The notes under the pieces were generated by a model. It was not told the DNA's origin. It worked only from the letters and a program-made list of their open reading frames with translations, and ran no database searches. A stretch of 64,000 nucleotides of DNA, from the sequence record PV231353.1; one strand, 5' to 3'. The translations under genes and the position numbers were made by a program. Below are positions 4,985 to 62,510 of this stretch, in pieces; positions within the stretch are counted from its first letter, which is position 1, and each line of letters begins with the position of its first letter.

Positions 4985-5035
4985 CCTCGCGACACTACGC
5001 TTTGGGTTCTTGTATTGTCAACACATCACTTCAGG
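4985..5035 (-). promoter_or_regulatory. sigma70-type promoter (TTGACA-N18-TAGTGT), near-leaderless
   Basis: -35 at 5016-5021; no SD and no ACGACAAC leader before the ATG at 4983. Confidence 0.7.
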
Positions 5036-6963: not shown

Positions 6964-7038
6964 GAAAAGGGCCTCCGGCGTTGTCGTCGAAGGCCCTTCT
7001 AGCGAGTCGGTGTCAGGCTGTCAACACATGTCAGCCAA
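6964..7038 (-). promoter_or_regulatory. promoter-leader cassette with dyad and U-tract
   Basis: TTGGC-N6-GTG-TTGACA(7019-7024)-N17-TAGAAG-GGCCTTCG-ACGACAACGC-CGGAGGCCC-TTTTC-ATG. Confidence 0.85.
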
Positions 7039-8558: not shown

Positions 8559-8562
8559 AGGA

Positions 8563-15642: not shown

Positions 15643-15714
15643 GTGCGGCTCCTCTCGCTGTCGTGAGGGAGCTTGTACGGGGCCACGGAGAGGCTGTCAA
15701 CACTCTAACGCCAA
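15643..15714 (-). promoter_or_regulatory. promoter-leader cassette
   Basis: TTGGC-N6-GTG-TTGACA(15695-15700)-N17-TACAAG-CTCCCTC-ACGACAGC-GAGAGGAG. Confidence 0.85.
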
Positions 15715-18941: not shown

Positions 18942-19015
18942 GAGGGTCTCCTCTGCGGTTGTCGTCGCCCGCCTCTTAGGACAAGGCCTCGGCCTTGTCA
19001 ACACATTCAAGCCAA
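18942..19015 (-). promoter_or_regulatory. promoter-leader cassette
   Basis: TTGGC-N6-GTG-TTGACA(18996-19001)-N17-TAAGAG ... ACGACAACC ... GAGGAG. Confidence 0.85.
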
Positions 19016-20896: not shown

Positions 20897-20965
20897 GGGA
20901 CCTCCTGGTTGTCGTCGTGCGGCTTTTAGCCCCGATAGGTCAGGCTGTCAACACAGTGCAGCCAG
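20897..20965 (-). promoter_or_regulatory. promoter-leader cassette
   Basis: TGGC-N6-GTG-TTGACA(20946-20951)-N17-TAAAAG ... ACGACAACC-AGGAGG. Confidence 0.85.
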
Positions 20966-22787: not shown

Positions 22788-22857
22788 CAGGGCCTCCTCG
22801 TTGTCGTCGAGGGGGTTCTAGCCGGCGACCGCGACCTTGTCAACACTCTCGCGCCAG
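22788..22857 (-). promoter_or_regulatory. promoter-leader cassette
   Basis: TGGCGCGAGAGTG-TTGACA(22838-22843)-N17-TAGAAC-CCCCTCG-ACGACAA-CGAGGAGG. Confidence 0.9.
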
Positions 22858-24237: not shown

Positions 24238-24968
24238 GGCTCTCCCCCTGGTGTCGTTTCGGCGCTTCTAGCCCTGCCAAGCAGGGCCGTCAACACATCA
24301 GCGCCATGCCAGACCCAGGACAGGCTCAGGATGAGGTCGCGGTCCTCATAGGCGGCGCTGCGCCCGGTGATCACCTTGATCGCCGAGAGTGGCCCAAACC
24401 GCCAGAAGACGACCGTGCGCGAATCGTTGCGACCCGGCAAGTGCTCCAGCAACACGCGACGCTTGATCGCCAAATGCCGCTGCTCTCTGTGGAGGACGAG
24501 CGCGATCTTGCGCGTTGGATCAGACCCGAACCACCGACGCCAGTAGCCCGGATTGTCGATGTTCTCGAACAGCCGGCCGATCCGCTTGCTGACTGGGCGA
24601 AGCCCAGGCTCGCGGCGACGCACGCTCAGCGGCGGGAAGGTGCAGGGCGGCCATTCCGGAAGCAGGCGCAGACGCAGCCTCCGGAATTCCCACGCTGGCA
24701 TGGCGTTGTCCTTGGTGTTGTTGCACGCCACGCAGGCCGCCGCCAGATTGCTCTCGTGGTTCGATCCGCCTTCGGCCTTGGCCTCCAGGTGCTCGATCGT
24801 CACCTCGTCGGGCTCCAGCTTGCCGCCGCCTCGGCCGATCCGCCGACGATAGGCCATCTGCCCCGTGCAATAGGTGCAGAGGCCGCCCGATTCCAGGAAG
24901 AGGCGGTGACGGCGGTTGGGCGCGGCGGGCGGTAGCGGGTCTTGGACCACCACCTCAGATGAGGACAT
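24234..24968 (-). CDS. HNH endonuclease (McrA-like) with C-terminal extension
   Basis: CTYC ... TIEH......GGSN..SNL..AC..CNN.K. Confidence 0.8.
   Translation of the reverse strand: MSSSEVVVQDPLPPAAPNRRHRLFLESGGLCTYCTGQMAYRRRIGRGGGKLEPDEVTIEHLEAKAEGGSNHESNLAAACVACNNTKDNAMPAWEFRRLRLRLLPEWPPCTFPPLSVRRREPGLRPVSKRIGRLFENIDNPGYWRRWFGSDPTRKIALVLHREQRHLAIKRRVLLEHLPGRNDSRTVVFWRFGPLSAIKVITGRSAAYEDRDLILSLSWVWHGADVLTALLGRARSAETTPGGEP
24238..24308 (-). promoter_or_regulatory. promoter-leader cassette for the ACP gene
   Basis: TGGC-N6-GTG-TTGACG(24288-24293)-GCCCTGCTTGGCAGGGC-TAGAAG ... ACGACACC-AGGGGGAG. Confidence 0.8.
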
Positions 24969-28939: not shown

Positions 28940-29012
28940 GGAGGCCTCCTTGTTGTCGTCGAGGATGGCTTCTAGCCGGCCCAGGTCAGGTTGTCAACAC
29001 TCGACAGCCAAG
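28940..29012 (-). promoter_or_regulatory. promoter-leader cassette
   Basis: TTGGC-N6-GTG-TTGACA(28992-28997)-N17-TAGAAG ... ACGACAAC-AAGGAGG. Confidence 0.9.
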
Positions 29013-31624: not shown

Positions 31625-32001
31625 CAGGCCGCCACGAGCCCGGTGATCACGTCGGTGACGATGCGGCGCTTCTCGGCCGGCATGCCCGCCAGCGCCAGGA
31701 TCGTCTTGGCGCCGATCTCGGCGACGGCGGTCTCGACGTCGGCCCGGCCGTCGGTCAGGAACGCCGGATCGTCGACCGGCGGATAGAAGTGCCCGATGTC
31801 CTTCTTCAGGAACTGGGCCGCCTCATAGAGCTTCGAGGACGAGATGCGGTTGTGCCCGCGCTCGTATTTCTGGACCTGCTGGAAGGTCACGCCGATCGCC
31901 TCGGCGAGTTGGCCTTGCGAGAAGCCGGCCGTCTTGCGGGTGTCGCGCAGCTTGCGTCCCACATAGACGTCGACGGGGTGCGGGGTCTTGTCGTCAGCCA
32001 T
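31624..32001 (-). CDS. XRE-family HTH regulator (PhrR/PraR type; candidate homolog of phiCbK Tgrl)
   Basis: HPVDVYVG.KLR..R...G.SQ.QLAEAIGVTFQQVQKYERG.NRIS. Confidence 0.9.
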   Translation of the reverse strand: MADDKTPHPVDVYVGRKLRDTRKTAGFSQGQLAEAIGVTFQQVQKYERGHNRISSSKLYEAAQFLKKDIGHFYPPVDDPAFLTDGRADVETAVAEIGAKTILALAGMPAEKRRIVTDVITGLVAA

Positions 32002-33260: not shown

Positions 33261-33334
33261 GCGGCCTCCTTCTGTCGTTGTGTCGACATAAGCTCTAGCC
33301 GTGGTTTTCCGGCCTGTCAACACACAACCGCCAA
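33261..33334 (-). promoter_or_regulatory. promoter-leader cassette
   Basis: TTGGC-N6-GTG-TTGACA(33315-33320)-N17-TAGAGC ... ACACAACGACAG-AAGGAGG. Confidence 0.85.
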
Positions 33335-33396: not shown

Positions 33397-35520
33397 TCAG
33401 ACGTCCAGAGCGAAGGCCGGCGGGGAGACGTCCGGCTTCTGAATGATGAATCCCCGATCCAAGAGGGGCGGGAAGACCTGCTTGAGCACGCCGGCCGCGA
33501 CCCCGGCTTCCTCGGCGATTTCGGCGAACGTGAAGGCCTCGCGCTGACCGGCGCTGGCGACAAACAGATCGTTGAGCGCCAGGATCACCGCGCCCGCCGG
33601 ACTGATCTCGTAGGCCATGTCGAAATTCGGGTCTTCCGACAGCCGCAGCAGGCCTTCCGCCTCCAGGTTCGCGATGAGCGCCTTGAGTTGGTCGACCTTG
33701 ACCGCGCCAAGATGGGTTTGGATTTCCCAGGCCGCCGCCGGCTCCTCGGCGCGCACGGCTTGCAGCGTCGCGATCAAGGCGATCGCCGGCATGGCCCGCA
33801 CGATCATCTCGTCGCCAACCGTCAGGTCCGGGGCGTTGACCAGCAGGTCATTGATCACCGCGTCGCCGTGGGTCTCGACATAGGTCCGCAGCCGCTTGAG
33901 GGCGACCAGGAAATCGTCCTTGGTGATCGGCTCGATGCGGAAGGTCAGGAGCGGGTCGGTCGGAATCTCCGAGAAGTAGGCCCGACCCCGGTGGCTCCAG
34001 CCCTCGACCACATGCAGGAAGAGATCGATCGGCATGGCGACGGCGCCAAAGCCCAGTCGCGCATCGTCCGTCGCCTCCTCGACCTGCGCCAAGGCGTTGT
34101 CGATCGCTTCGAGCGTGAAGCCCCCGACAAGGCCGTTTTCCGCCGCGTCCAGCACGTTGGCCGCTTCTTCGGTGCCGAGCCCTTCGACGACCATTTCCGA
34201 GGCCTCCTGAGCCGTTTCCTGCGGCAGGGCGTCGGCGAGCTTGCTCATCGCCTCGGCGACGCCGCTCGTGTCGAGTTCCAGCTTCAGGGCCAGCTTCTCG
34301 GGACGCGCCGAGTAGGGCACGCCCTGGATCACCACGGCGCCCAGGTCGCCGACGACGCGCTTGGTCACTTCCAGATAGGCGTAGCGCGAGGCGGCGTTGA
34401 GCAGCGACAGCCGTTCGAAGACGATCTGCTGCTCCTGCTCGCGCGACAGGATGCCCGTCTCCAGGATGAACAGCGGCTCGGAGCCATCCAGCGGGGGCTT
34501 GGCCTCGCCGTCGTCTTCCGGAAGGTCCTCGTCGAAATCGGCGCCGTTGATCGGCTCGCTCTCCGGCGGGGTGAAGCGGATGCCCGGCTCGCGGGGCGGT
34601 TCGGCGGGAGTGGCGTCGTCGAGAGGCATGTCGGTCCTTTGAGGCTTGGAGGTGATGAAGAGCGTGGTGAGATCGACGTCCCAGACCCCGCGCCCGTCGG
34701 TGAAGAGCGCCATGAAGGTCCCCAGGCGCGCATCCCAGCGGATGGTCTGGATCACGCCGTTGACGTCGCCATAGACGCCGGTCGCCCCCACGAGTTCATC
34801 GCGCAGGACCTCCGCATGGTCGTGGCACTCACCAAGCGTCGCCGGACGCACGGCGTGGAACGGGTATTGCTGATAGGCGCCCGGCGGCGAGACGAGGCGG
34901 ACATTGACGTAGAGCGGCCCCAGATAGGTGTGGGCGTCGCGCAGGAAGCCGACCACGGTCTCCCCGTCGTTCTGGGTCGCCACCACGGGCATGCCGGCGC
35001 AGTTAGCCGTCAGGACCGCCGGATAGTCCTGGGGATAGGCCACGGCGTACAGGTGGAGATGATCACCCCGGCGCTGGGCCTTCCAGTCGGCGACACACCA
35101 AGCCGCCACCCGCGTGGCCCCGAACTCCGGCGTCTCCTCGATCAAGACGCCGCCGTCCGGAAGGTCCGCCTGCCCGACGTAAGGAACGACCTCGCTATGG
35201 CTGACGCTCCAGGCGGGCTTGGGAAATTGCGGGGTGATCATGAGCTTCTCGGTGAAGGTGAGATTGATGGCGTCGGCGTAGTGAACATACGGGCCGACCG
35301 GGGTAGTCCAGGGCGGATCACCCTTGCGGATGTCCGACAGCGGCACCGCGACGTGCCTGCCGTTGGGCTGGACGATGTCAGCCAGGATGCGCGGCGGCTG
35401 GTGCATCAGGGTCACGACGTGCCCCTCGCCCGCCTCGAAGGTGCGGCTCTTGGGCCACCAGACCTTGGACCCGGTCCAGTGGATCGACTGGATGACAAGG
35501 TCCTGTTCGGTCCCGATCAT
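33397..35520 (-). CDS. large hypothetical protein with C-terminal winged-helix-like segments
   Basis: 707 aa; L..LEAEGLL...YEISPAG and FTFAEIAEEAGV...LLDRGFI. Confidence 0.8.
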   Translation of the reverse strand: MIGTEQDLVIQSIHWTGSKVWWPKSRTFEAGEGHVVTLMHQPPRILADIVQPNGRHVAVPLSDIRKGDPPWTTPVGPYVHYADAINLTFTEKLMITPQFPKPAWSVSHSEVVPYVGQADLPDGGVLIEETPEFGATRVAAWCVADWKAQRRGDHLHLYAVAYPQDYPAVLTANCAGMPVVATQNDGETVVGFLRDAHTYLGPLYVNVRLVSPPGAYQQYPFHAVRPATLGECHDHAEVLRDELVGATGVYGDVNGVIQTIRWDARLGTFMALFTDGRGVWDVDLTTLFITSKPQRTDMPLDDATPAEPPREPGIRFTPPESEPINGADFDEDLPEDDGEAKPPLDGSEPLFILETGILSREQEQQIVFERLSLLNAASRYAYLEVTKRVVGDLGAVVIQGVPYSARPEKLALKLELDTSGVAEAMSKLADALPQETAQEASEMVVEGLGTEEAANVLDAAENGLVGGFTLEAIDNALAQVEEATDDARLGFGAVAMPIDLFLHVVEGWSHRGRAYFSEIPTDPLLTFRIEPITKDDFLVALKRLRTYVETHGDAVINDLLVNAPDLTVGDEMIVRAMPAIALIATLQAVRAEEPAAAWEIQTHLGAVKVDQLKALIANLEAEGLLRLSEDPNFDMAYEISPAGAVILALNDLFVASAGQREAFTFAEIAEEAGVAAGVLKQVFPPLLDRGFIIQKPDVSPPAFALDV

Positions 35521-35941
35521 GCGGACGCCGCCGCGCCAGCCGGCGTCAAACCGTAGATGGTGGGCCTCGCGGCGACTTGCCGATCGCGACCACTTCCAGA
35601 TAGCCCATATTGTTCAAAGCCTTTGCCGTTTCATGATCGGGATGGTCGGTGAAGACGTTGAGCCGCCCGCCCTCGCCCATCGCCTGGGCGGCGCGCAGAA
35701 GGCTCGCCTCGGCTTCGGTCAAGGTGACCAAGGCGACGTCCTCCAGCGCCACGTCGATCACGCAGGTCTGACCCTGGTGAACGAACTCGATAATCGCCAG
35801 CCGGCGATAGGTCCCCGGCAGGACCGCGAGGCAGACGCCTCGGACCTCGACCTTCTGGCGGGCGGTGATCGGGAGATAGAGGCTCGTCTTGACGGCCTTG
35901 CCCTTGAGGGACAGATGCTCGTGCGTCGCCAGCGGGATCAT
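35517..35941 (-). CDS. hypothetical protein, wHTH-like end (frameshift at about 35565)
   Basis: One extra G gives ...LNNMGYLEV...TIYGLTPAGAAASA*, with the stop overlapping the next ATG. Confidence 0.65.
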
Positions 35942-36183
35942 GGCTCGACCTTCCGGACAGTGTAGGAGAATTCGTCGTGGACGCGACCGTCGAAACTAGC
36001 CTCGTAGCCGGGGCCGAGTTCGGCCAGGATGCGCGCCTCGATCTCGGCGAAGTCGATTTTCGCCATCGCCTGTTCGGCCGCCCGCATCTGCTGGAGGAAG
36101 CCGTCCTTGATCTGGCGCCCCGCCTCGGTGCGGATCGGGATGTTCTGGATCGGCGGCTCGGATTTCGACAGACGCTCGCCCAT
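35938..36183 (-). CDS. hypothetical protein
   Basis: Start MGERLSK coupled to the gcrA stop. Confidence 0.65.
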   Translation of the reverse strand: MGERLSKSEPPIQNIPIRTEAGRQIKDGFLQQMRAAEQAMAKIDFAEIEARILAELGPGYEASFDGRVHDEFSYTVRKVEP

Positions 36184-36731
36184 CAGGCCCTCCGGCGATA
36201 GACCCGCACCGGGCGGGTGGGGAGGCGTTTCTCGGGCGGCTTGTAGGCGACCAGGGCATGGCTGATGCAGTAGACGCCCGCCTCGGCGCGGCACCCGCAA
36301 TGGCCAAAGTCCGGCGAGTTCGGGTCGCCATAGGGCCAGCGGCACATTCCGCGCTTGAGTTCGGCCGTCGCGAACAGCCGCGCCGGGCGCGGCGGGATGA
36401 CCGCCGTTCCTTCGGGGACCAGGGCGAGCTTGGGCTTGGCCGGCGGAGCGGGCTTTTCGACCTTCTTGGGCTTGCGCGCCGTGGCCTTCTTGACCTTGCG
36501 GACCTGGATGCCCAGGCCGCGCGTCTTCTTGTGGCGGGCGGTCGGAGGCGGAACCTTCTCGCCCAGTTCGCCGGCGGCCTTCAGTCGGTCGGCCTTGCCG
36601 CAGACGGCGCTCTTGGTGCGCGGCACGCTCAGGCGCTGACCGATCTCCTTGGTCCCGACCGGCTCCGCCCAGAGCTTCTTGAGCAGGGCGATGTCCTCGT
36701 CCGGCCAGTCGGAATTCCGCTTCTTCACCAC
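36183..36731 (-). CDS. gcrA: GcrA cell-cycle regulator homolog
   Basis: N-terminal W..E.I..LKKLW.E....EIG..L...TKSAV.GK..RL; C-terminal CRWPYGDP..PDF..CG....YC..H...AY.P. Confidence 0.9.
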   Translation of the reverse strand: MVKKRNSDWPDEDIALLKKLWAEPVGTKEIGQRLSVPRTKSAVCGKADRLKAAGELGEKVPPPTARHKKTRGLGIQVRKVKKATARKPKKVEKPAPPAKPKLALVPEGTAVIPPRPARLFATAELKRGMCRWPYGDPNSPDFGHCGCRAEAGVYCISHALVAYKPPEKRLPTRPVRVYRRRA

Positions 36732-36738: not shown

Positions 36739-36918
36739 CTACTCCTTGATCTCGACGCTCTTGGGCGGATTGGGATGAGGAACGAAGACCAGGGCCACGT
36801 CCTGACCGCCGGTATAGCGCGTGCGCCGGCTGTAGAGCCAGCCGCCTTCCACCGCCAACCGCTCGGTCACCTGACCATCGGCTTCGTCGATCTTTTCCCA
36901 CTTGGACTTCTTAGCCAT
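36739..36918 (-). CDS. small hypothetical protein (59 aa)
   Basis: Not in ORF track; MAKKSKWEKIDEADGQVTERLAVEGGWLY...VFVPHP; GAGGGG SD. Confidence 0.7.
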   Translation of the reverse strand: MAKKSKWEKIDEADGQVTERLAVEGGWLYSRRTRYTGGQDVALVFVPHPNPPKSVEIKE

Positions 36919-37053
36919 CTTCCCCTCGAATTTGGCGGCACCCTAGAGGAGCGTTCGAGTGTTGACAAGCACCAATGTCGCTGGCTTTCGAGTGTTGACA
37001 AGTCCGGTGCTCGTCTATAGGGGAGACCGGGACGACAACGAAAGGAGCCTGCC
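36919..37053. promoter_or_regulatory. divergent promoter region
   Basis: Leftward TTGTCA(36963-36968)-N17-TAGGGT; rightward TGGC-N6-GTG-TTGACA(36995-37000) ... TATAGG ... ACGACAACG-AAAGGAG. Confidence 0.75.
36954..37002 (+). repeat. 16-bp direct repeat x2
   Basis: TTCGAGTGTTGACAAG at 36954-36969 and 36987-37002. Confidence 0.9.
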
Positions 37054-38984: not shown

Positions 38985-39239
38985 ATGCTGAGCAAGGACG
39001 AGATCACCTTCGCGGGCCTGATCAAGGCCATGGAGGACGCCCGGCGCATCGCCAAGGCGGCGGGCGATCTCGTCAGCACGGCCGAGATCGACGGCTGGTT
39101 CAAGACGCACGCGCCGATCATTCGCGAGGTGCGAGACAAGGTCGAGGCCGACGAGTTCGACGCTGGCGCGAGAGTGTTGACAGCCACTGAGGAAGCGGCT
39201 AAAGACACTCTCGACGACAGCGAAAGGAGCCTGCCTTGA
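38985..39239 (+). CDS. hypothetical protein
   Basis: 84 aa; reads through the next promoter. Confidence 0.65.
   Translation: MLSKDEITFAGLIKAMEDARRIAKAAGDLVSTAEIDGWFKTHAPIIREVRDKVEADEFDAGARVLTATEEAAKDTLDDSERSLP
39163..39235 (+). promoter_or_regulatory. promoter-leader cassette
   Basis: TGGCGCGAGAGTG-TTGACA(39177-39182)-N17-TAAAGA ... ACGACAGCG-AAAGGAG. Confidence 0.85.
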
Positions 39240-40253
39240 CCGACTTCCCGATCATCCGCGCCGCCATCTCGCCCCGCCGCGCCGCCCAGTTCGACGCGGC
39301 CCTGGCGAACGTGAAGGCCTTCACCGAGGAAGGCGTTCTGATCAAGGCCGAGTGGAACGACATCAAGGACACGTTCAGCCGGGCGATCGCCGAGACCTGG
39401 GACGCCTTCAAGGACAAGGAATACTACCCCGCGCCCGCGAGGGTGAGCACGAGAACGTCGGCAAGCTCTACTGGGAGCTTCTGAGCCCCTATCCGCACGT
39501 GCTGGCCGGCTATCTGAAGAAGGCCCAGAACGCCAAGAACATCGAGCCGGCGATCCTGCGCGACTTCCCGATCGCCTTCTTCACCGAGGCCCTGCCGCTC
39601 AACGACATGCTGGTCGCGCTCAAGCCGCTGATCGGCAAGCGCGCGCCGAAGAAGACCAAGGTCCAGATCGAGCGCGAGGGCAAGGAGCGGACCTGTCAGG
39701 TCTGCGGGCGCGGCATCCTGGCCGAGAACGGCCGGATCGCCCACCACGGCTATCAGCGTCCCGGCATGGGCTACCAGACCCCTCGTGCAGCGGCGCCCTG
39801 GAACTGCCCTTCGAGATCAGCCGTGACGCCCTGGGCGCCGACATCGAGAACCTGAAGGCCTACCGCGCTCGCCGGCAGACCTATCGCTCCGACGTCAACC
39901 TGGAACTGGTCAGCCTGCCGGTCAAGTATCAGGTCTCCGAACAGGACCCGCGCCGCGCGCCGGGCTTCAAGCACGTGGTCGACAAGATGATCCACGTCAC
40001 CCGCGCCGACTGGGACGCCCAAAAGGCCGCGACGCCGGAAGCCTTCGCCGGCAAGTACGGGCCGCGCAAGCCCAACTACACCTACGAGCCCTTCACCTTC
40101 GACGCCCTGAAGACCCAGGTCCTGGGCATGGTCGACGGCGAGATCGAGTTCATCACCGGTACGATCCGGGCGCAGCAGAAGCGCTATGACGACTGGAAGC
40201 AGACGATGGAGTTCGTCGACGGCCAGTACCGGACGCTGGAGGTCGCGGCTTGA
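39236..40253 (+). CDS. hypothetical protein with Cys/His metal-binding motif (frameshifts at about 39428 and 39780)
   Basis: Adding 2 C gives 339 aa containing TCQVCGR...AHHGYQRPG.GYQT.SC.GA..PFE. Confidence 0.7.
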
Positions 40254-42286: not shown

Positions 42287-42358
42287 CTGGCGCGAAAGTG
42301 TTGACAGCCTGAAGGGACTCCTCTACACCCACGCTCGATGACAACGAGAGGAGTTCCC
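42287..42358 (+). promoter_or_regulatory. promoter-leader cassette
   Basis: TGGC-N6-GTG-TTGACA(42301-42306)-N17-TACACC ... CTCG-ATGACAA-CGAG-AGGAG. Confidence 0.8.
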
Positions 42359-44116
42359 ATGGCCGAGACCATGACCCTGAGTTTCCGGATCGAAGGCGCC
42401 GCCCTGGTGGAGCGGGCGCGCGATCGCGTCATCGAAGGTAACTGGGAGCACGGCCTGCGCATCCTGGTCGAGGGCCTGCACGGCATGTCCTACGAACTCG
42501 CGATCGACATCCTGCTCGGCAAGCACACCCTGGGCGGCTGGTCCTCGGACCCCGAAGGCGTCTATCTCACCGACCAGGACCCGGAGGACGAGACTTTCAA
42601 GCGTTACAAGGAAACCCTCGACTACCAGTTCGCCGGCGTCTTCAAGCTGGAGGATGGCCGGATCATGCGTCCCTACGCCGTGGTCGACAGCTTCTCCAAG
42701 ATCGACTTCGACTCCAGGGTCCGCTTCCTGCGGCTGGCCCAGGGCTCTGACCCGGTGTTCTCGCGCCCCAAGCGCTATCACGACACCCGCGCCGAGATCA
42801 ACGGCGAGGAGATCGACTGGGCCTATCGCGCCCTGCACTACGCCGACGAGCCGACCCAGGACATCGTCCGTCTGGTCCGTATGGAGGGCTTCCATCCCAC
42901 GATCCGGGCGGCGGTCCTGTTCAAGGAAGTCCGCGACTATCCCAAGCTCCTGCTTCCGAAGGTCGAGACCGACGCCCAGAAGGCCGTCGATGTGGCGATC
43001 AAGGCCCAGCGCGGCCTCTCCAAGCGCGGGCACGTCTACGAGTATGGCGCTGGTCAGGACTTCGACAAGGAGCACTACAAGACCACCATGGGGATCGATC
43101 AGGTCCCCACCGCCTGGACCGTGCGCAATCCGAAGTACGTCGATCCCGACGCCAAGCTCGTCAAGGACACCCTGGCCGAGATCGACGCCCGCAAGGTCGC
43201 GCCGGCCTCCGATTACGCCGGCGCCATGAACCGTCTGATCAAGGACGAGGTGGACGGCGGCATGGACATCAGCACGGCCGTCGCCATGACCCAGGCCAAG
43301 ATGGCGCTGCTGGGCGGCATGGCCGAGGACCCCGAACAGCGCCTGCGGGCGATCAACGACGCCTACGCCGCCAAGTTCGAGAAGGCCGAGGGCCGCAGCG
43401 TCGAGGAGTACCGCAAGGCCATCATCACCCAGGCTGGCGATGACTTCTTCGATCTCGCGTACACGGATGTGGACGGCAAGGAGGTCGTCCTGAAGGTCCC
43501 GACCGCGCCGTTCGAGCAATGGGCTCTGTGGCGCACCGCCGGCGCCCATCTGGCCAAGCCCTGGAAGCGGGTGACCTACACCGGCTTCAAGACCTTCGGC
43601 GATGATCCCTACCACACCGACTGGGTGCTGGGCGCGGGGCTCAACCCCGAGGACTGGCCGGTCATCGAGGCCGACAATCCGCCGCTCCACAAGGCCGCCT
43701 GGGACAAGCGCTTCCGGGTCGCCGAGGAGAAGCTGGGCGGCAACATGCGCGTCCTGCTCGGCAAGGGCTTCGTGACCGGCAAGATCGTGATGCTCAAGCC
43801 GGGCGAGGCCCTGTCACCGGGCGAGATCGGTGTGATCCGCAACGCCGGCCCCGACTACGTCCAGGCCGCCCAGAGCGCGATCGAGCACAACACCGCCTTG
43901 ATCTGCGAGAACGGCGGCAGCGTCGCCCACCTCGTGGTCGAGTACCTGGACAAGCCCCTGCGCCTGACCCGGATCGAGAACGCGCGCAAGATTTTCAAGG
44001 ACGGCATGACCGTCTACCTCGACTTTGACAAGTCGACGCGAGAGATCGCCAAGGGCGGCCTGGGGCCGAGCCCTGCCGATCTTGGCCTCGACACGGAATG
44101 GGAGATTTTCGAATGA
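42359..44116 (+). CDS. large protein with C-terminal PEP-utilising enzyme mobile (phospho-His) domain
   Basis: G.VTGKIV ... GEIGVI....PDY ... ALICENGGSVAH ... FKDGMTVYLD. Confidence 0.75.
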   Translation: MAETMTLSFRIEGAALVERARDRVIEGNWEHGLRILVEGLHGMSYELAIDILLGKHTLGGWSSDPEGVYLTDQDPEDETFKRYKETLDYQFAGVFKLEDGRIMRPYAVVDSFSKIDFDSRVRFLRLAQGSDPVFSRPKRYHDTRAEINGEEIDWAYRALHYADEPTQDIVRLVRMEGFHPTIRAAVLFKEVRDYPKLLLPKVETDAQKAVDVAIKAQRGLSKRGHVYEYGAGQDFDKEHYKTTMGIDQVPTAWTVRNPKYVDPDAKLVKDTLAEIDARKVAPASDYAGAMNRLIKDEVDGGMDISTAVAMTQAKMALLGGMAEDPEQRLRAINDAYAAKFEKAEGRSVEEYRKAIITQAGDDFFDLAYTDVDGKEVVLKVPTAPFEQWALWRTAGAHLAKPWKRVTYTGFKTFGDDPYHTDWVLGAGLNPEDWPVIEADNPPLHKAAWDKRFRVAEEKLGGNMRVLLGKGFVTGKIVMLKPGEALSPGEIGVIRNAGPDYVQAAQSAIEHNTALICENGGSVAHLVVEYLDKPLRLTRIENARKIFKDGMTVYLDFDKSTREIAKGGLGPSPADLGLDTEWEIFE

Positions 44117-44409
44117 GCGAGAAGTGGCAACCGGTGGAGGAAGCCGCCAATAACCTCTCCGGCTGGAACGTGCGCTCGGCCCAGATGGCGGTCGCCGGCG
44201 GGACCCTCTACCGCACGATCGTCTCGCGCGACAGCCAGGGCGCCGCGCCGGCGGTGAGCACCACCTTCATCCCGGACGCCCCGCCGCAGTTCACCGTCCA
44301 GGTCACCGACGAGGACCTCCGGAGCCTTGCCGAGTGCAAGGACGTCGCCAGGGCGCGCAGCCTGTTCCGGGGCATCCTGAAGGCTCACGGCCTGGAGATC
44401 ATGGCCTGA
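44113..44409 (+). CDS. hypothetical protein
   Basis: Start MSEKWQP; ATGA overlap. Confidence 0.7.
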   Translation: MSEKWQPVEEAANNLSGWNVRSAQMAVAGGTLYRTIVSRDSQGAAPAVSTTFIPDAPPQFTVQVTDEDLRSLAECKDVARARSLFRGILKAHGLEIMA

Positions 44410-44620
44410 TGCCGGTCTTCCATTTCACCGCCACGGTCGTTCACGAGTACGACCTGACCCTGGAGGCGGACGACGAGGCCGAGGCCCGCGAACGCTTGGA
44501 GGACTTTGGCGTCGACTACGACCCGGGCATCTTCTGACCCTGGATGAGCCGACGTCCGAAATGACGTTCAACCTCTTCGCGGTCGACGACAAGATGGTCA
44601 ACGAAGAGGAGACCGCCTAG
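44409..44620 (+). CDS. small acidic protein (frameshift at about 44526)
   Basis: One extra base gives 70 aa ending next to the following ATG. Confidence 0.55.
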
Positions 44621-45127: not shown

Positions 45128-45696
45128 TCGATCCGAAAGCCAAACTCGCCGACCAAGTCGCCGGCCTCGGCCGTGACGGCGCCCGGCTCTGCGCCGAGGT
45201 ACAGGAGCGATGCACCAGCAACATCGCCGACGCCGTGCTGGAATTCGTCGCCGACGCCGAGACGATCATCGAGCGCCAACAAAAACGCGTCGATGAACTC
45301 CAGGTCTCGACGGCGCGGCGGATGCACGTCGAGCGGGCCTATCTGCGGGTGATCCAGGAGTTCATCGCCGCCAAGCGCCTGCCGAGCCTGTCGGCGTTCC
45401 ATGACGCGGTCGGCATGCTCCAGGCCCAGACCGAGCAGATGAACGGCGACATCGAGCGGCTCGCGACCTATCTGCGCGGACTGGACCGGCGCGACATGGA
45501 CCCCAAGCTGAAGGACCTCGTGGAGCACCTGGACTTCTACATCTTCCACGAGTTGATGCGGAAGATCCACTACATCGAGCATTTCGTCCTGCGGGACGCC
45601 CGCCTCGCCTTGGTCAGCCTGACCGAGGCCGATTTCGGGCGGATGGGCTTGGGCGAGCGCCCCGAGCCCCCGGTCAGCCAGGACATGCCGACATGA
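45124..45696 (+). CDS. hypothetical coiled-coil protein
   Basis: 190 aa, ATGA overlap. Confidence 0.7.
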   Translation: MIDPKAKLADQVAGLGRDGARLCAEVQERCTSNIADAVLEFVADAETIIERQQKRVDELQVSTARRMHVERAYLRVIQEFIAAKRLPSLSAFHDAVGMLQAQTEQMNGDIERLATYLRGLDRRDMDPKLKDLVEHLDFYIFHELMRKIHYIEHFVLRDARLALVSLTEADFGRMGLGERPEPPVSQDMPT

Positions 45697-45929
45697 TCGA
45701 GCACGTCTGGCGCCGTGACCCGCGCGGTCCCGCCTATGGCTTCCAGCGCCTGGACCTGGACGAGGCGCTGAAGATCGTCGCGGTCGAGAAGCAGGACTTC
45801 CTCCTCCATCTGGTCGCGGTCCTGCACGAGAACAACCTCCTGCGCGACGATGACGTCATGGAACTGCTCGGCAAGGGCTGGGCGCTCGACCCTACGATCT
45901 CCACCACATCGACGAAGATTAGGCGTTGA
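45693..45929 (+). CDS. hypothetical protein
   Basis: 78 aa; stop lies inside the next -35 box. Confidence 0.65.
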   Translation: MIEHVWRRDPRGPAYGFQRLDLDEALKIVAVEKQDFLLHLVAVLHENNLLRDDDVMELLGKGWALDPTISTTSTKIRR

Positions 45930-45982
45930 CAACACTCTCGCGCCAACATAGAACCGCCCTCGACGACAACGAGGAGGCTTCC
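45926..45982 (+). promoter_or_regulatory. promoter-leader cassette, flipped-element type
   Basis: TTGACA-ACACTCTCGCGCCAACA-TAGAAC ... CCTCG-ACGACAA-CGAGGAGG. Confidence 0.9.
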
Positions 45983-46366
45983 ATGAAGCTCGCGACCCAA
46001 GACCGCTCCGACCCGCGCTTGAACGCGCCCTACCGCCTCGCCAAGGCGGTGTTCTACTACGGCGGCCCGCACGAGTACCCGATCCACCTGAACGACTGGT
46101 GGAACGAGGTGACGCCGGCCGACGTGGAGGATCGCATCTCCGATCTCTGCCGCGAGCTTTCCAAGCTGTCGGGCCAGACCCTGGCGCCGGCGACCTTCTA
46201 CGAGCGGATGAAGCTGGGCTTCGTCGACCTCCCGGAGGTCAAGGACGAGGACTTCGCCGCCCTGTCGGAAGCGACCCGCAACAACCTGCTGGCCATGCAG
46301 GACCGCTTCTCGGTCCACGGCAGCGGCTTCATGCTCTACTGGAACATCGTGAAAGAGGAGGCCTGA
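45983..46366 (+). CDS. hypothetical protein
   Basis: Start MKLATQDR behind SD. Confidence 0.8.
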   Translation: MKLATQDRSDPRLNAPYRLAKAVFYYGGPHEYPIHLNDWWNEVTPADVEDRISDLCRELSKLSGQTLAPATFYERMKLGFVDLPEVKDEDFAALSEATRNNLLAMQDRFSVHGSGFMLYWNIVKEEA

Positions 46367-47427: not shown

Positions 47428-47496
47428 CTGGCGTTCTTGTGTTGACAAGGCCGGAGCCGCTGGCCTAGAACGTCGTGGACGACAACAGGAGGGACC
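47428..47496 (+). promoter_or_regulatory. promoter-leader cassette
   Basis: TGGC-N6-GTG-TTGACA(47442-47447)-N17-TAGAAC ... ACGACAAC-AGGAGG. Confidence 0.9.
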
Positions 47497-47853
47497 ATGC
47501 CGCTCTACGACTTTCCGACCGGACCGACCACGATGGAGGACATCGAGGCGTTCGTCGCCGGCGCCCAGGCGGTGGTGACCGCCCAACTGGCCAAGGCCTT
47601 TCCCGGCGTGTCCGCGCCGGTCCTGGAGATCGCGCCGGTTCACCCGAGCAGCCAGTTCGCCAAGATCGTCGCGGTCGACGCCAGCCAGCGCTCGGCCTGG
47701 GCGTTCGTCCGACTGGAGAACGGCCTGATCTATAAGCCCTCGTCGTGGAAGGTGCCAGCCAAGCATGCGCGCGGCACGATCCATACCGCCGCGCACGGCG
47801 CCGAGTACGTCGACTGGACCGGCCCCCGCTATGTGAAGGACCTGCGTCGATGA
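47497..47853 (+). CDS. conserved phage hypothetical protein
   Basis: AKIV.....SAWAFV....G.IYKP.SWK.PAK..RG.I. Confidence 0.8.
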   Translation: MPLYDFPTGPTTMEDIEAFVAGAQAVVTAQLAKAFPGVSAPVLEIAPVHPSSQFAKIVAVDASQRSAWAFVRLENGLIYKPSSWKVPAKHARGTIHTAAHGAEYVDWTGPRYVKDLRR

Positions 47854-53953: not shown

Positions 53954-54645
53954 TTTTTGTTTTTGGAGACATACACGGCCGCCTCGACCTCCTGGAGAAG
54001 GCGCGACACGAAATCCGTGTACGCGGCGACTGCACGCAGATGATCTTCCTCGGGGACTATGTCGATCGCGGACCCGATAGCAAGGGCGTCGTCGAGGCCG
54101 TGATGGCGCTCCAGGCCCAGGGCGAGATCGCCCTGATGGGCAACCACGAGGAAATGATGCTGACCGCCTGTCAGATCAAGTCCTACAACGCCATGTCCAA
54201 GCTCTGGGTGTCGAACGGCGGCAAGCAGACCCTGAAGTCCTACGGGGCCGGCGACAATGCCTGGAACGCCAAATGGGACCTGATCCCCCAGGAGCACGTC
54301 GACTGGCTGGCGCGGCTCAAACCGATCCACGAGACGCCGGGGCGGGTGTTCGTCCACGCGGGCCTCGCGCCGGGGGTGGCGATCAAGATGCAGGAGGAGG
54401 AACACCTTCTCTGGATCAGGGACAAGTTCCTCAACGCCTCGGCCGACCAGTTCGAAAAGCACGTCGTCCACGGCCACACCCACACCCATGCGCGCAAGAA
54501 GATCGAAGAGCCCGAGCTTCTCGCGCATCGGACCAACCTCGACACCGGGGCCTTCTATACCGGCGTCCTGGCCGTCGGGGTGTTCGATCCGGACGGCTAT
54601 GGCGGACCCGAGGAGGTGCTGTTGATCCGCGAGGACGACGCATGA
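53950..54645 (+). CDS. Ser/Thr protein phosphatase (metallophosphoesterase, PPP family)
   Basis: GDIHG, GDYVDRG, GNHE, FVHAG, HGHT, LDTG. Confidence 0.9.
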   Translation: MIFVFGDIHGRLDLLEKARHEIRVRGDCTQMIFLGDYVDRGPDSKGVVEAVMALQAQGEIALMGNHEEMMLTACQIKSYNAMSKLWVSNGGKQTLKSYGAGDNAWNAKWDLIPQEHVDWLARLKPIHETPGRVFVHAGLAPGVAIKMQEEEHLLWIRDKFLNASADQFEKHVVHGHTHTHARKKIEEPELLAHRTNLDTGAFYTGVLAVGVFDPDGYGGPEEVLLIREDDA

Positions 54646-55232: not shown

Positions 55233-55303
55233 TTGGCGCGAGAACGTTGACAGCCTCGGCGTGGTGTCATAAAAGCCTCCTCGACGACAACGAGGAGGCC
55301 CCC
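55233..55303 (+). promoter_or_regulatory. promoter-leader cassette with perfect dyad
   Basis: TTGGC-N6-ACG-TTGACA(55247-55252)-N17-TAAAAG; GCCTCCTCG-ACGACAA-CGAGGAGGC (55275-55299). Confidence 0.9.
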
Positions 55304-55723
55304 ATGGCTTACGCAATTCCGGACCTGAGCACGTTCACGTTCCACGACCCCAAGGTCGAACGGTTCGCCAAGGCGATGATCTCGACGATCGAGACCGCCC
55401 AGACCATGCTCACGGCCTTCGCCAACGATCTCGCCGACAATCCTCTTCAGGCGTTCGAGCATAGCTACGGCGCCAAGATGGCCGCCGCCCACAGGGACGT
55501 CGCCAAGGGGCTGCTCAACGAAGTCCTCGACGCGCTGCTGCACGGTCAGGACAAGACCTGGGCCTACATCGGCCAGGACCTGCGCGAGCGGCTGATGTAC
55601 CGCGTGATCTACGCGGCCTCGAACCCGCCGCGCTCGACCAACGCCGAGAGCAACGACATGGCCCGCTTCGTCCTGCGCGCCGAGGCCGACATGCTCGACC
55701 GCATGACCAAGAGCCGCTTCTGA
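55304..55723 (+). CDS. hypothetical protein
   Basis: Start MAYAIPD behind SD. Confidence 0.8.
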   Translation: MAYAIPDLSTFTFHDPKVERFAKAMISTIETAQTMLTAFANDLADNPLQAFEHSYGAKMAAAHRDVAKGLLNEVLDALLHGQDKTWAYIGQDLRERLMYRVIYAASNPPRSTNAESNDMARFVLRAEADMLDRMTKSRF

Positions 55724-56255: not shown

Positions 56256-56333
56256 TTGGCGTTCAAGTGTTGCCAAAGCTGATCTGATCAGCTAGAACCC
56301 TCGCCGACGACAACGCAAGAGGAGCCCCGAGCC
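56256..56333 (+). promoter_or_regulatory. promoter-leader cassette with palindromic spacer
   Basis: TTGGC-N6-GTG-TTGCCA(56270-56275); AGCTGATC-T-GATCAGCT; TAGAAC ... ACGACAACG ... GAGGAG. Confidence 0.8.
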
Positions 56334-56714
56334 GTGGAACACCTGACCCGCGCCATCGACCCCCGCATCGGCTACCTGAACTCGGGCGTCTACTACGCCT
56401 TCGTCGACGGCTACGACAAGCCCGAGACGCGCGGCACGCTCGAAGAGGTCGAGATCGCCCTGGGCCTGCGCGCCGCGAAGCCGGCTCCGACCAAGCGCAT
56501 CGTCGCCGCCCAGCCGGCCGTCAGGACCTACTCGGTCCACATGCGGTTCGAATATCCGGGCTGGAGCTACGTCGACGGCATCACCTACGACGGTATGCTC
56601 GGCCGCACGAAGGCCGAAGCGATCCGCAACGCCCGCGCCGAGGCCTTTGCCGACGGTCACCTCGGCGTCGGCCAGGGTCGCGTGTGGTTCAAGGCCACGG
56701 AAGAGGACGCCTAG
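56334..56714 (+). CDS. hypothetical protein
   Basis: GTG start behind cassette. Confidence 0.75.
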   Translation: MEHLTRAIDPRIGYLNSGVYYAFVDGYDKPETRGTLEEVEIALGLRAAKPAPTKRIVAAQPAVRTYSVHMRFEYPGWSYVDGITYDGMLGRTKAEAIRNARAEAFADGHLGVGQGRVWFKATEEDA

Positions 56715-57283: not shown

Positions 57284-57330
57284 TGGCTTCAGTGTGTTGA
57301 CGGCGCGTCGATCGCCCGCTAAGAAGGGCT
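57284..57330 (+). promoter_or_regulatory. promoter (no ACGACAAC leader)
   Basis: TGGC-N6-GTG-TTGACG(57297-57302)-N17-TAAGAA. Confidence 0.8.
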
Positions 57331-57350: not shown

Positions 57351-59414
57351 ATGAATTTTCAATCCGAAAGGGGCCTTAAGTCCATGGATTTCCACGTCTT
57401 TAAGACGGCTGTCGCCAAGCAGTGGGCCGCGATGACCAAGGGTGACGCGACCTTGTTCCGCGTCGACGTCGACAAGGACCTCCTGTGGTCGACCTACCTG
57501 AAGGCGTTCCCGGCTGGGACCGATCCGATCTTCCGCGAGCGCTCCGAGCACGACTGCTCGTGCTGCCGCAACTTCATCCGAAACGCCGGCGACGCCGTGG
57601 CGGTGGTCAACGGCCAGATCGTCACGATCTGGGACTGGCCGATCGAGGGCGAGCCGGCCTATCAGCAGGTCTCCCAGACCCTGGCGGCGCTGGTCCGTTC
57701 GCGTCCGGTGCGCGACATCTTCCTGCATGACCAGAACAGAATCGGGACCGACAAGAACGTCGAGACCATGCTGGGCGGCGACGTCACCTGGAACCACTTC
57801 TTCGTCAATGTCCCCTCGCGCTTCGTCAAGAAGGGCAAGGACATCCCGACCGCGCTCCACCTCCCGCGCACGGCGCAGGAGACGCTCCTGCGCGCCGTCA
57901 ACGAGATCACCGACGAGGCGATCGACACGGTGCTGGACCTGATCGCCCAGAACGCGCTCTATCGCGGGGCCGAACACAAGTCGGCGGTGGTGGCGTTCCA
58001 GAAGGCCAAGAAGACCTTCGAGGGCCTGTCGGCCGCCGACAAGGCGCTGAAGGCCTGGGTCAACGTCGCCAGCGGCGAACTCTGGGGCTCGGTCTCGGGC
58101 ATCCGGAGCACGGTGATCGGCTCGCTGCTGGTCGACCTGTCGGCCGATGTCGACCTGGAGGAGGCGGTCAAGAAGTTCGAGGCCAAGGTCGCGCCGTACA
58201 ACTACAAGCGCACGACCGCCCTGGTGACCAAGAAGCAGATCGAGAACGCCAAGAAGACGATCTCCGACCTGGGCCTGACCTCGGCTCTGGAGCGGCGCTA
58301 CGCCGTCCTCAAGGACGTGTCGATCAACGACGTGCTGTTCGCCGACCGCGACGCCAAGTCGGTGATGAACGACGTCTTCGACGATCTGGCGGCCGACGTC
58401 GCCGAGAAGGCCAAGGCCTATGACAAGGTCGAGGAGGTGTCGATCGACAAGTTCCTGGCCGACATCCTCCCGAGGGTGACGAGCGTCGAGGCCCTGGTCG
58501 AGAACCGCCTGACGAGCAACTTCGTCAGCCTGATCGCGCCGGTCGACCCGACCGCTGGCTCCCTCTTCAAGTGGGGGAACAACTTCTCCTGGTCCTACGC
58601 CGGCGAGGTGGCGGACTCGATCAAGGCCCGCGTCAAGGCGGCCGGCGGCAACGTCACCGGCGATCTCTGCTGCCGTCTGGCGTGGTTCAACTACGACGAC
58701 CTGGACTTCCACATGCGGGAGCCGGGTGGCAGCACGATCTACTTCCGCCAGAAGTCCTCGCCCGTCACGGGCGGGCGGCTCGACGTCGACATGAACGCCG
58801 GCGGTGGTCAGACGCGCGAGCCGGTCGAGAACATCTTCTACGGCGACCGCCGGACGATGAAGGAGGGCGTTTACGAACTGATCGTCCATCAGTACAGCAA
58901 GCGCGAGACCCGCGACGTCGGCTTCGAGGTGGAAATCGACTACCTGGGCTCGGTCACCCGCTACGCCTACACGACGGCCGTCCGCCAGGATCAGTCCGTC
59001 ACGGTCGCCAAGTTCAAGTACAGCCACGCCGGCGGCATCGAGTTCATCTCCTCGCTCCCGGCCTCGTCGGCGAGCAAGGACGTCTGGGGCGTGAAGACCG
59101 AGACCTTCCGCAAGGTCAACGTCATCATGCTCTCGCCCAACCACTGGGAAGGCGAGCCGGGCGTGGGGAACAAGCACTGGTTCTTCATGCTGGACGGGGG
59201 CGTCAACGAAGACGGCGCTCGCGGCTTCTACAACGAGTTCCTGAAGGACAGCCTCACGCCCCACCGTCGCGTCTTCGAGATGCTGGGGTCCAAGCTGAAG
59301 CCCGCGCCGGCCGCCGACCAACTCAGCGGCCTGGGCTTCTCCTCGACCAAGCGCGACGAACTCGTCGTGCGCGTCAAGGGGGCCTTCACCCGTACCCTCA
59401 AGATCAAATTCTAA
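57351..59414 (+). CDS. large conserved phage protein with possible YfaP/DUF2135-like domain
   Basis: HDCSCCR.FI; W.N.DDLD.H..EP.G..IYF ... LDVDMNAG ... VENI.Y ... G.Y...V; start may be ATG 57384. Confidence 0.8.
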   Translation: MNFQSERGLKSMDFHVFKTAVAKQWAAMTKGDATLFRVDVDKDLLWSTYLKAFPAGTDPIFRERSEHDCSCCRNFIRNAGDAVAVVNGQIVTIWDWPIEGEPAYQQVSQTLAALVRSRPVRDIFLHDQNRIGTDKNVETMLGGDVTWNHFFVNVPSRFVKKGKDIPTALHLPRTAQETLLRAVNEITDEAIDTVLDLIAQNALYRGAEHKSAVVAFQKAKKTFEGLSAADKALKAWVNVASGELWGSVSGIRSTVIGSLLVDLSADVDLEEAVKKFEAKVAPYNYKRTTALVTKKQIENAKKTISDLGLTSALERRYAVLKDVSINDVLFADRDAKSVMNDVFDDLAADVAEKAKAYDKVEEVSIDKFLADILPRVTSVEALVENRLTSNFVSLIAPVDPTAGSLFKWGNNFSWSYAGEVADSIKARVKAAGGNVTGDLCCRLAWFNYDDLDFHMREPGGSTIYFRQKSSPVTGGRLDVDMNAGGGQTREPVENIFYGDRRTMKEGVYELIVHQYSKRETRDVGFEVEIDYLGSVTRYAYTTAVRQDQSVTVAKFKYSHAGGIEFISSLPASSASKDVWGVKTETFRKVNVIMLSPNHWEGEPGVGNKHWFFMLDGGVNEDGARGFYNEFLKDSLTPHRRVFEMLGSKLKPAPAADQLSGLGFSSTKRDELVVRVKGAFTRTLKIKF

Positions 59415-59433: not shown

Positions 59434-59850
59434 ATGAGCGATCTCTTCGAAATCGCCGCGCGCGAGAAGTTCCGCTTCGACACCCCGAAGGGCCTGCTGC
59501 CCGTCGAGGACCTGTTCGATCTGCCGCTGACCAGCACGACCGGCAAGGCCAACCTGAACGATCTGGCCGTCGATCTGTTCAAGCAGATCAAGGACCTGGA
59601 CGACATCTCGTTCGTCACGCCCAAGAAGATCGACCCGACCGTTGGTCAGCGTCTGGACATCGTCAAGCGGGTGATCGAGATCAAGCAGGCCGAGAACGCC
59701 GCCAAGGTGAAGTCGGCCCAGGACAAGGAAACCCTGCGCATCCTGGACGAGGCGATCGCCGCCAAGAAGTCCGAGAAGATCGCCGGCACCTCGCTGGAAG
59801 ACCTGGAAGCCCAGCGCGCGGCCCTGCTGGCGGGCGGCGCCTCGGCCTAG
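59434..59850 (+). CDS. conserved helical partner protein
   Basis: LFEIAAREKFRF....G....EDLFDLPLT ... SFV; coiled-coil C-terminus. Confidence 0.8.
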   Translation: MSDLFEIAAREKFRFDTPKGLLPVEDLFDLPLTSTTGKANLNDLAVDLFKQIKDLDDISFVTPKKIDPTVGQRLDIVKRVIEIKQAENAAKVKSAQDKETLRILDEAIAAKKSEKIAGTSLEDLEAQRAALLAGGASA

Positions 59851-59876
59851 CCTTCGGGCGGCCGTGTCATAGGCGC

Positions 59877-59938
59877 TTGACAACACTCTCGCGCCAACAT
59901 AGAAGGGCCTCCGACGACAACGCCGGAGGCCCTTTTTC
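59877..59938 (+). promoter_or_regulatory. promoter-leader cassette, flipped-element type, dyad plus U-tract
   Basis: TTGACA-ACACTCTCGCGCCAACA-TAGAAG; GGGCCTCCG-ACGACAACGC-CGGAGGCCC-TTTTT. Confidence 0.9.
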
Positions 59939-60169: not shown

Positions 60170-60174
60170 CCATC

Positions 60175-62144: not shown

Positions 62145-62443
62145 GCGACCACGACGCCTGCCTGACCAACTGGGTCCTCTGCGACGCGCCCGGCGGCGGG
62201 CTGGTGGTGATCGGCGAAATCATGGCCGACAAGCGCGGGCGCTGGCCGGACGGGCGGCTCATCCACACCTCGCTCCTCCAGGTCAAGGCCGAGGCGGTGG
62301 CGCCGGGCGCGGTGGTCGCCACGCTCAACTCCCGCTACATCCTGGGGCGCAAGGCCGAGGAGATCACCGTCCGGCACTTCGTCGGGGCGATGCTCGCCCG
62401 CGTCGCGATCAGACCGCTTGACAACACTCTCGCGCCAACATAG
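62141..62443 (+). CDS. hypothetical protein
   Basis: G....DKRGRWPDG..IHTS ... TLNSRY.L; reads through the next promoter. Confidence 0.7.
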   Translation: MSDHDACLTNWVLCDAPGGGLVVIGEIMADKRGRWPDGRLIHTSLLQVKAEAVAPGAVVATLNSRYILGRKAEEITVRHFVGAMLARVAIRPLDNTLAPT

Positions 62444-62510
62444 AAGGGTCCTCGACGACAACGGCTGTCCGAAATTTGTAGACAGATTTCGGACATAGAG
62501 GAGCACCCCG
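62418..62510 (+). promoter_or_regulatory. promoter-leader cassette, flipped-element type, with inserted 30-bp palindrome
   Basis: TTGACA-ACACTCTCGCGCCAACA-TAGAAG ... ACGACAACG-GC-TGTCCGAAATTTGT-AG-ACAGATTTCGGACA-TAGAGGAG. Confidence 0.85.

Follow-up and report, generated by a model that had tools for sequence, protein, structure and literature searches.

In the genome of Caulobacter phage RBC57, an element that normally stands directly upstream of the promoter -35 is also found, flipped, between the -35 and the -10. This raises the question of how such a mirrored promoter arose, and what may read the element in its two positions. The window analysed, a stretch of 64,000 nucleotides, is bases 1-64000 of RBC57 (PV231353.1, 208,414 bp; 100% identity by megablast). 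Megablast also gave 94-97% identity with phiCbK, CcrSwift, Karma and Magneto, and about 77-88% with CcrRogue, CcrBL10 and BL57. A preliminary description reported a 28-mer repeated identically at 45926, 59877 and 62418, and exact matches do lie there, all on the plus strand (45926-45953, 59877-59904 and 62418-62445). None of 100 dinucleotide-preserving shuffles contained a match, and the whole 208-kb record holds only these three flipped copies. Identity among them has sharp limits, the first T of the -35 on one side and the last base of the -10 on the other, and beyond these the flanking sequences are unrelated.

The window is annotated as two divergent arms of small genes, mostly hypothetical; the genes to the left of about 36.9 kb lie on the minus strand and those to the right on the plus strand. 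In phiCbK, 41% of the genes are early, with transcripts that have reached their peak at the first time point (15 min) and fall afterwards (PMC10688885), so some mechanism of shut-off is needed. Infection RNA-seq from one 2023 study, in the form of assembled contigs from which starts, ends and levels are not readable, covers the region without a break; the contig ends at the 28-mer repeats are due to assembly and have no bearing on transcription. The phiCbK contigs of the infection study also replace a 213-bp stretch of the window (44408-44620) by 360 other bases, an indel or replacement between RBC57 and phiCbK. No published description of these promoters was found, and the phiCbK genome paper mentions promoters once, with no such motif.

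The window, the full genomes of RBC57, phiCbK and Rogue and the early halves of BL57 and BL10 were scanned for related units, and 19-26 early promoter cassettes were obtained per genome. Each cassette consists of a T-rich tract (sometimes), a box YTGGCK-N4-WGTG, TTGACA, a spacer of 16-18 nt and TAGAAG/C, followed after 5-8 nt by the tag GACGACAAC, a Shine-Dalgarno sequence and the start codon. Besides the three flipped promoters, about 16 early promoters in the window have the normal layout with the box directly upstream of the -35, typically as YTGGCK-N4-WGTG, TTGACA, N17, TAGAAG/C and the GACGACAAC leader (Table 1). The 15-mer TTGGCGCGAGAGTGT was matched 8 times in the window with at most 2 mismatches, against 0.20 expected. 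It lies on the gene strand before a -35 at 22843-22857 (-), 39163-39177 (+), 42287 (+), 55233 (+) and 15700-15714 (-), and on the opposite strand inside all three 28-mers. CTGGCGCGAGAGTG is immediately 5' of TTGACA at 39163-39182 (+) and 22838-22857 (-). Reading of the sequence confirmed that the spacer of the 28-mer is, as had been described, the reverse complement of the element before the -35 at these two sites, and that TGGC-N6-GTG is missing upstream of the three 28-mer promoters. The broader proposal of an asymmetric site of ~20 bp, present in both orientations and pivoting on the near-palindromic TTG(A/T)CAA, is supported.

Table 1. Flipped and normal promoters and the leaders of the flipped promoters in the window, with their predicted genes.
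Feature	Position	Strand	Elements	Gene and context
Flipped promoter 1	45926..45954	+	-35 TTGACA 45926-45931; mirrored box CAC-N6-GCCA 45933-45945; -10 TAGAAC 45949-45954	predicted driver of CDS 45983-46366 (MKLATQDR...); upstream CDS 45693-45929 has its stop codon within the -35
Flipped promoter 2	59877..59905	+	-35 59877-59882; mirrored box 59884-59896; -10 TAGAAG 59900-59905	predicted driver of CDS 59939-60169; wholly intergenic
Flipped promoter 3	62418..62446	+	-35 62418-62423; mirrored box 62425-62437; -10 TAGAAG 62441-62446	predicted driver of CDS 62511-62894 (MAQRLKIKE...); upstream CDS 62141-62443 extends through the promoter
Normal box and -35	39164..39182	+	box TGGCGCGAGAGTG, then -35 TTGACA	predicted driver of CDS 39236-39484
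Normal box and -35	22838..22856	-	box sequence same as in flipped copies	predicted driver of CDS 21759-22787 (annotated antirestriction protein)
Normal variant box and -35	55234..55252	+	box TGGCGCGAGAACG	predicted driver of CDS 55304-55723 (MAYAIPDL...)
Normal box and -35	42288..42306	+		predicted driver of CDS 42359-44116
Normal box and -35	47429..47447	+		predicted driver of CDS 47497-47853
Normal box and -35 variant	56257..56275	+	-35 TTGCCA; palindromic spacer	predicted driver of CDS 56334-56714
Normal box and -35 variant	57284..57302	+	-35 TTGACG; without leader tag	upstream of CDS 57384-59414
Tandem pair of box and -35 units	36949..37000	+	36949-36967 (degenerate), 36982-37000	
Normal box and -35	7019..7037	-	box, spacer and leader (nearly) identical across all five phages	
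Normal box and -35	15695..15713	-	TGGCGTTAGAGTG, with ATTCTTTGT 5' of box; among the closest mirrors of the flipped 29-mer (23/29)	
Normal box and -35	18996..19014	-		
Normal box and -35	20946..20964	-		
Normal box and -35 variant	24288..24306	-	-35 TTGACG; hairpin-forming spacer	
Normal box and -35	28992..29010	-		
Normal box and -35	33315..33333	-		
Leader tag, promoter 1	45962..45970	+	GACGACAAC as loop of CCUCG/CGAGG hairpin; 3' arm runs into Shine-Dalgarno	
Leader, promoter 2	59905..59937	+	9-bp G+C-rich hairpin around tag (59913-59921), then five T; Shine-Dalgarno in 3' arm	
Leader, promoter 3	62454..62497	+	tag 62454-62462, then perfect 13-bp hairpin at about 62466-62495	

The tag GACGACAAC stands a few bases 3' of the -10 in nearly every early cassette (14 matches against 0.7 expected; examples at 45960-45971, 55281-55292, 22799-22810 (-) and 6979-6990 (-)), and in roughly one third of the leaders it forms the loop of a hairpin with a stem of 4 bp or more and the Shine-Dalgarno sequence in the 3' arm. 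The hairpin of flipped promoter 1 has a folding energy of -12.1 kcal/mol (z -2.3). That of promoter 2 reaches -22.1 kcal/mol (z -4.3), none of 200 shuffles folds as well, and the leader looks like an intrinsic terminator. Another terminator-like leader, with a 9-bp G+C-rich hairpin, a T run and a ribosome-binding site, lies at 6965-6998 (-). Such leaders might stop read-through from upstream and let pass locally started RNAs that lack the 5' arm. The leader of promoter 3 is also found after a flipped promoter in phiCbK, Rogue and BL10.

Two further features of the normal promoters were observed. The spacers of several are perfect palindromes or hairpins (24270-24287 (-), 56276-56292 (+) and 18978-18995 (-)), for example GCCCTGC-TTG-GCAGGGC and GCTGATC-T-GATCAGC, and could serve as further operators or as RNA-processing signals. 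The two units of the tandem pair are 33 bp apart, at the place where the early arms diverge.

The consensus of the Caulobacter RpoD (sigma-73) promoter is TTGaCgS / GCtANAWC (PMC8144410). The three flipped copies fit it with the -35 TTGACAA, a 17-nt spacer and the -10 CATAGAAC/G, which agrees at 6-7 of 8 positions and keeps the TA.A core; the -10 of the normal promoters reads GCTAGAAG/C. By these signals the three 28-mers are predicted to be host-RpoD-type early promoters of a phiCbK-like phage. A scan with the E. coli consensus did not detect the cassette promoters, because their -10 lacks the final T. Three other assignments were rejected. For a sigma-54 promoter (TGGC-N7-TTGC, with GG and GC 10 nt apart), TT stands at the required distance and the nearest TTGA is 2 nt too far. 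For a CtrA box (TTAA-N7-TTAA), no TTAA occurs in the 28-mer or the box. For a class II activator-dependent promoter, with a site near -41.5 and a weak -35, the normal box is suitably centred, at about -42, but it stands beside a -35 that matches TTGACA perfectly. The centre of the flipped box is at about -22.

The 29 nt from -35 to -10 of the flipped promoter were reverse complemented and compared with the stretch from T-rich tract to -35 of normal promoters, and 23-24 of 29 positions match. This mirror takes in the TGT before TGGC and the T-rich tract and is longer than the element first described. Many normal boxes are preceded by a T-rich tract (TTCTTTGT / TTTTGT), and the -10 sequence TAGAA is therefore this tract in mirror image. 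The flipped promoter as a whole mirrors the front half of a normal one and continues into an ordinary leader. The pivot is the heptamer TTGACAA, its own near-mirror. Inversion had been offered as one origin of the flipped type, and it is supported because the mirror spans 29 nt and takes in the -10. To create the flipped type, one inversion and then two or three point changes would be enough, and a single small inversion may have given rise to it. The identity of the three copies could be due in part to gene conversion between repeats and not to selection.

A normal promoter on the minus strand (28997) reads on its reverse side as a flipped-type promoter at 28991-29018 (+), with TTGTCA, N16 and TAGACG, and this reading is kept in phiCbK. 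It could be an antisense promoter, and it illustrates in a present-day genome a way in which the flipped type could come about.

A search for the flip in related genomes, which the preliminary description had recommended, was carried out and found it in phiCbK, CcrRogue, BL57 and CcrBL10. RBC57, phiCbK and BL57 have three flipped copies each, and Rogue and BL10 have four and one variant each. In phiCbK the genes behind flipped promoters start at 169656, about 183540 and 186060, and those behind normal promoters include the genes at 165878 and 171170. Copies occur on the minus-strand arm too (BL57 153211, Rogue 151759 and BL10 150764). The flipped variant is thus old, being common to Shapirovirus, Poindextervirus and BL57. 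In IMG/VR the flipped pattern was found in the same isolates only, apart from one chance match in an unrelated A+T-rich provirus. The inner sequence of the flipped copies varies (GCGAGA, GTGAGA, GTTAGA and GCGAGT), and TGGC and GTG are invariant. On the opposite strand, the profile of the normal box is matched by all 17 full flipped copies from the five genomes. They vary only where normal boxes vary, which is suggestive at three variable positions, with a chance estimate of roughly 7%.

That profile, built from 76 distinct normal boxes, has strong information at TGGC, GTG and the flanking Y, K and W, and weaker information at the four inner positions. There is a modest A/T preference at -22 to -16, where many normal promoters have a T-rich tract. 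Divergence was measured over 59 inter-genus pairs of orthologous normal promoters, which are mutually non-independent. Identity was 0.905 in the 13-nt box, 0.83 in its inner N6, 0.825 in the -10 hexamer, 0.64 in the ordinary spacer and 0.50 in the 9 nt upstream of the box. Among paralogues within RBC57, identity of the N6 is 0.37, so every promoter has a box version of its own that it retains. One flipped promoter is orthologous in five phages, and its spacer has an identity of 0.88-0.94 between genera. It behaves as a box, close to 0.905, and not as a spacer at 0.64. Coding constraint does not explain this, since of the three copies the first overlaps no more than a stop codon, the second is intergenic and the third lies in a gene end. 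By its rate of change the flipped copy acts like a functional site.

A host origin of the box was tried and rejected in four Caulobacter genomes, about 16.5 Mb, with none of four patterns above control. The composite TGGC-N6-GTGTTGACA with at most 1 mismatch gave 1 match against 3 in the control, GTGTTGACA gave 14 against 8, YTGGC-N9-TTGACA gave 5 against 8, and the box alone gave 2 against 2. The early promoters of CcrColossus, a phage of the same host, are also of RpoD type but lack the box. The box belongs to the phiCbK-like genera and not to the host. Colossus early promoters have GTTTCTT directly before a TACAAG-type -10 and leader tags of their own, TGACGATCA / TGACGAACAAC (record positions 214960, 231280, 234389, 246344 (-) and 250204 (-)). 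Each phage lineage seems, from these sequences, to carry its own promoter signature on the same host.

Candidates for a protein that binds the box were sought among phage proteins. TgrL, the product of a phiCbK early gene, is the only phiCbK-encoded transcription factor with a measured motif, the TgrL/XRE motif CAAC(C/T)-N3-(G/A)(C/G)(G/T)-N-G (PMC10688885). A TgrL matrix (maximum score 18.5 bits) was rebuilt from the ChIP-seq data of S2 Table in that report (PMC10688885) and scanned over the genome. A TgrL/XRE operator was rejected, with 2.8-5.8 bits at the cassette promoters against 14.7 at the best genome site. The box thus differs from TgrL/RtrA-type XRE operators of Caulobacter and phiCbK, and a TgrL homologue, found in the window at 31624-32001 (-) as HTH_3 (Pfam), is also present in Colossus, although Colossus lacks the box. 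The window has 132 annotated proteins, of which 73 are conserved in both Rogue and BL57 but were undetected in Colossus. A Pfam scan of 70 window proteins (68 of these 73 and two others, including the TgrL homologue) gave no convincing new DNA-binding protein and no match tied to the box. Two winged-helix matches below threshold (20382-20726 (-) and 24955-25401 (-)) and a GcrA-like protein (36183-36731 (-)) were obtained. The gene of the latter is the second annotated gene of the minus arm, after a 59-residue ORF (36739-36918). Apart from one match at 54040-54645 (+), the plus-arm proteins have no Pfam family.

Other Pfam matches assign enzyme families to early genes annotated as hypothetical: a PTH2 peptidyl-tRNA hydrolase, two HNH endonucleases and a metallophosphoesterase (5026-5499 (-), 8055-8801 (-), 24234-24968 (-) and 54040-54645 (+)). 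At 33397-36183 (-), the match of an 81-residue ORF (35938-36183) to the family A DNA polymerase profile is limited to positions 120-170. Separate ORFs of 131 and 707 residues come after it, and the arrangement suggests that the polymerase gene is either split or wrongly annotated.

A phage-specific trans-acting factor that reads the box on double-stranded DNA is favoured because the flipped copy changes at the rate of the box, versions of individual promoters are kept among orthologues, the box is absent from host and Colossus, and its register to the -35 is strict. In the reading that we adopt tentatively, as possible rather than probable, an ancient inversion of 29 bp made the mirror promoter, and the box is the operator of such a factor, overlapping the footprint of RNA polymerase from either side of the -35. 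The putative factor, specific to phiCbK-like phages, would sit against the -35 in either layout, centred at about -42 or about -22 and in both cases within the footprint. Both promoter types would then be switched together, most simply by turning early transcription off once the first minutes have passed. The response of flipped copies may differ in strength, so that layout would modulate the response and not reverse it. The promoters appear intrinsically strong and early and should fire in a cell that has no phage proteins yet. Given strong promoters, both layouts within the footprint and their exchangeability, the simplest function would be a common switch, and repression would be the simplest sign consistent with the geometry.

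Known operators offer a partial parallel. The lambda cI/Cro operators and MerR-type spacer sites belong to strong promoters, where they overlap the -35 or occupy the spacer. The box resembles them in lying within the polymerase footprint of an apparently strong promoter, with the flipped site between -35 and -10. Those operators are usually dyad-symmetric and have a known protein, whereas the phiCbK-like box is asymmetric and is mirrored on either side of the -35.

The box might instead be read by host polymerase itself, as an extended -35 or UP-like strength element, with the flipped copies being a by-product of an inversion that by chance restored a functional -35 and -10, and made uniform by gene conversion. 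Its fixed register to the -35 in every copy, the T-rich tract in many normal promoters, its presence at nearly all early promoters and a mirror that reaches over the -10, as simple inversion predicts, are all consistent with this. We nevertheless consider it unlikely. Neither the box nor its halves are enriched beside TTGACA in the four host-genus genomes, and Colossus uses the same host without it. A flipped spacer that is not read should diverge like other spacers, yet it is kept nearly as a box is, and the inner N6 is kept per promoter while differing among paralogues.

Comparison of orthologous promoters bears further on how the two layouts are used. Promoters were grouped by the first residues of the downstream protein, with synteny assessed by tblastn. 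The gene at 45983 has a flipped promoter in all five phages (RBC57, phiCbK, BL57, Rogue and BL10). The antirestriction-annotated gene (21759-22787) has a normal promoter in RBC57 and phiCbK and a flipped one in BL57. The gene at 55304 has a normal promoter in RBC57, phiCbK and BL57 and a flipped one, with the same leader, in Rogue and BL10. The gene at 62511 (MAQRLKIKE) has a flipped promoter in RBC57 and phiCbK and a normal one in BL57, Rogue and BL10. In this last case the gene itself moved between cassettes, and the flipped cassette stays 3' of the 62141-62443 homologue in four phages. Promoter type has thus been interchanged at three orthologous genes and is constant at a fourth, so the two layouts are exchangeable before a given gene.

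Class II activator sites (CRP at -41.5) and the T4 MotA box abut or overlap the -35, and in activator-dependent promoters the -35 is weak or absent. Protein p4 of phage phi29 activates one promoter and represses others, according to the location of its site. One factor could, as the preliminary description had suggested, activate from the upstream box, at about -42, and repress from the spacer, at about -22; the two layouts would then define two kinetic classes. The geometry fits: TGGC and GTG are one helical turn apart, the normal box overlaps the -35 at a class II activator position, and the flipped box lies where spacer repressors bind. The box is also like the CRP class II site and the MotA box in abutting the -35 and marking a temporal class, and phi29 p4 is a precedent for position-dependent opposite outcomes of one factor. 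This reading is quite unlikely in our judgement. With a perfect TTGACA and a near-consensus -10, an activator is not needed, and -22 is no activator position. Early genes as a class already peak by the first time point. Three orthologous genes have the normal or the flipped type depending on the phage, with an otherwise unchanged leader. The p4 sites, for their part, are not mirror images on a shared -35.

The conserved flipped variant points to a possible regulator of the whole early gene set. A more general version, which we hold to be distinctly doubtful, is that a global early-gene regulator encoded by the phages reads an asymmetric box of 13-20 bp and that layout sets how strongly, with which sign or when a promoter responds, so that one factor would produce kinetic sub-classes of early genes. 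There, the box could be installed on either side of the -35 because TTGACAA is its own mirror.

To the left of the cassette at 59877, all five phages have a syntenic gene, and to its right each has a different one, so that this stretch (59850-60170) is a boundary of gene replacement. In Rogue and BL10 the homologue of 59939-60169 occupies another place, and phiCbK and BL57 have none. At the few junctions examined, the cassettes appear to mark points of shuffling. The PeSL (promoter-early stem-loop) cassettes of T4-type phages are many near-identical copies of a host-type early promoter and a stem-loop between small early genes (PMC2839356, PMC4122927). PeSLs share with the phiCbK-like cassettes the repeated host-type early promoter with stem-loop, the place between small early genes of unassigned function, and sites where related phages differ in gene content. 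The phiCbK-like cassettes likewise combine a repeated promoter and stem-loop (a hairpin in part of the leaders) and lie at breakpoints of gene content, again at few junctions examined. They differ from PeSLs in that the stem-loop is a downstream leader with a ribosome-binding site, and in having an extra conserved 13-bp box at the -35 in two mirror layouts; similarity in sequence would not be expected.

The cassettes could accordingly be supposed to be mainly PeSL-like recombination modules, with box and palindromic -35 as microhomology and flipped copies as scars or mediators of inversion between the arms. The 59877 cassette, the movement of the MAQRLKIKE gene between normal and flipped cassettes and the presence of flipped copies on both arms agree with this. 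We regard it as very unlikely to be the main function, since shuffling can be a consequence and not the purpose of repeated promoters, and since neither the exact -35 register nor the invariance of TGGC and GTG beside an N6 that is variable among paralogues and conserved among orthologues is explained. Hardly credible is a leftward (antisense or divergent) promoter sharing the -35 region, with the flipped box and TTGTCA as its front half: each copy does read on the bottom strand as a full normal box followed by TTGTCA, and the normal promoter at 28991/28997 has a correctly placed opposite-strand TAGACG, but no -10-like hexamer lies 16-18 nt left of the three copies or of the flipped copies of other phages, the left flanks are unrelated, and all genes of the arm are on the plus strand.

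phiCbK is the standard phage of the Caulobacter cell-cycle model, and what is at stake here is the control of its roughly 40% early genes. A conserved, phage-specific box on about twenty early promoters would provide a handle for finding the regulator, and the natural mirror copies are a ready-made experiment in position and orientation. The cassettes appear to mark where these jumbo phages swap early genes, and as compact promoters predicted to be strong with host polymerase they could be useful parts for Caulobacter.
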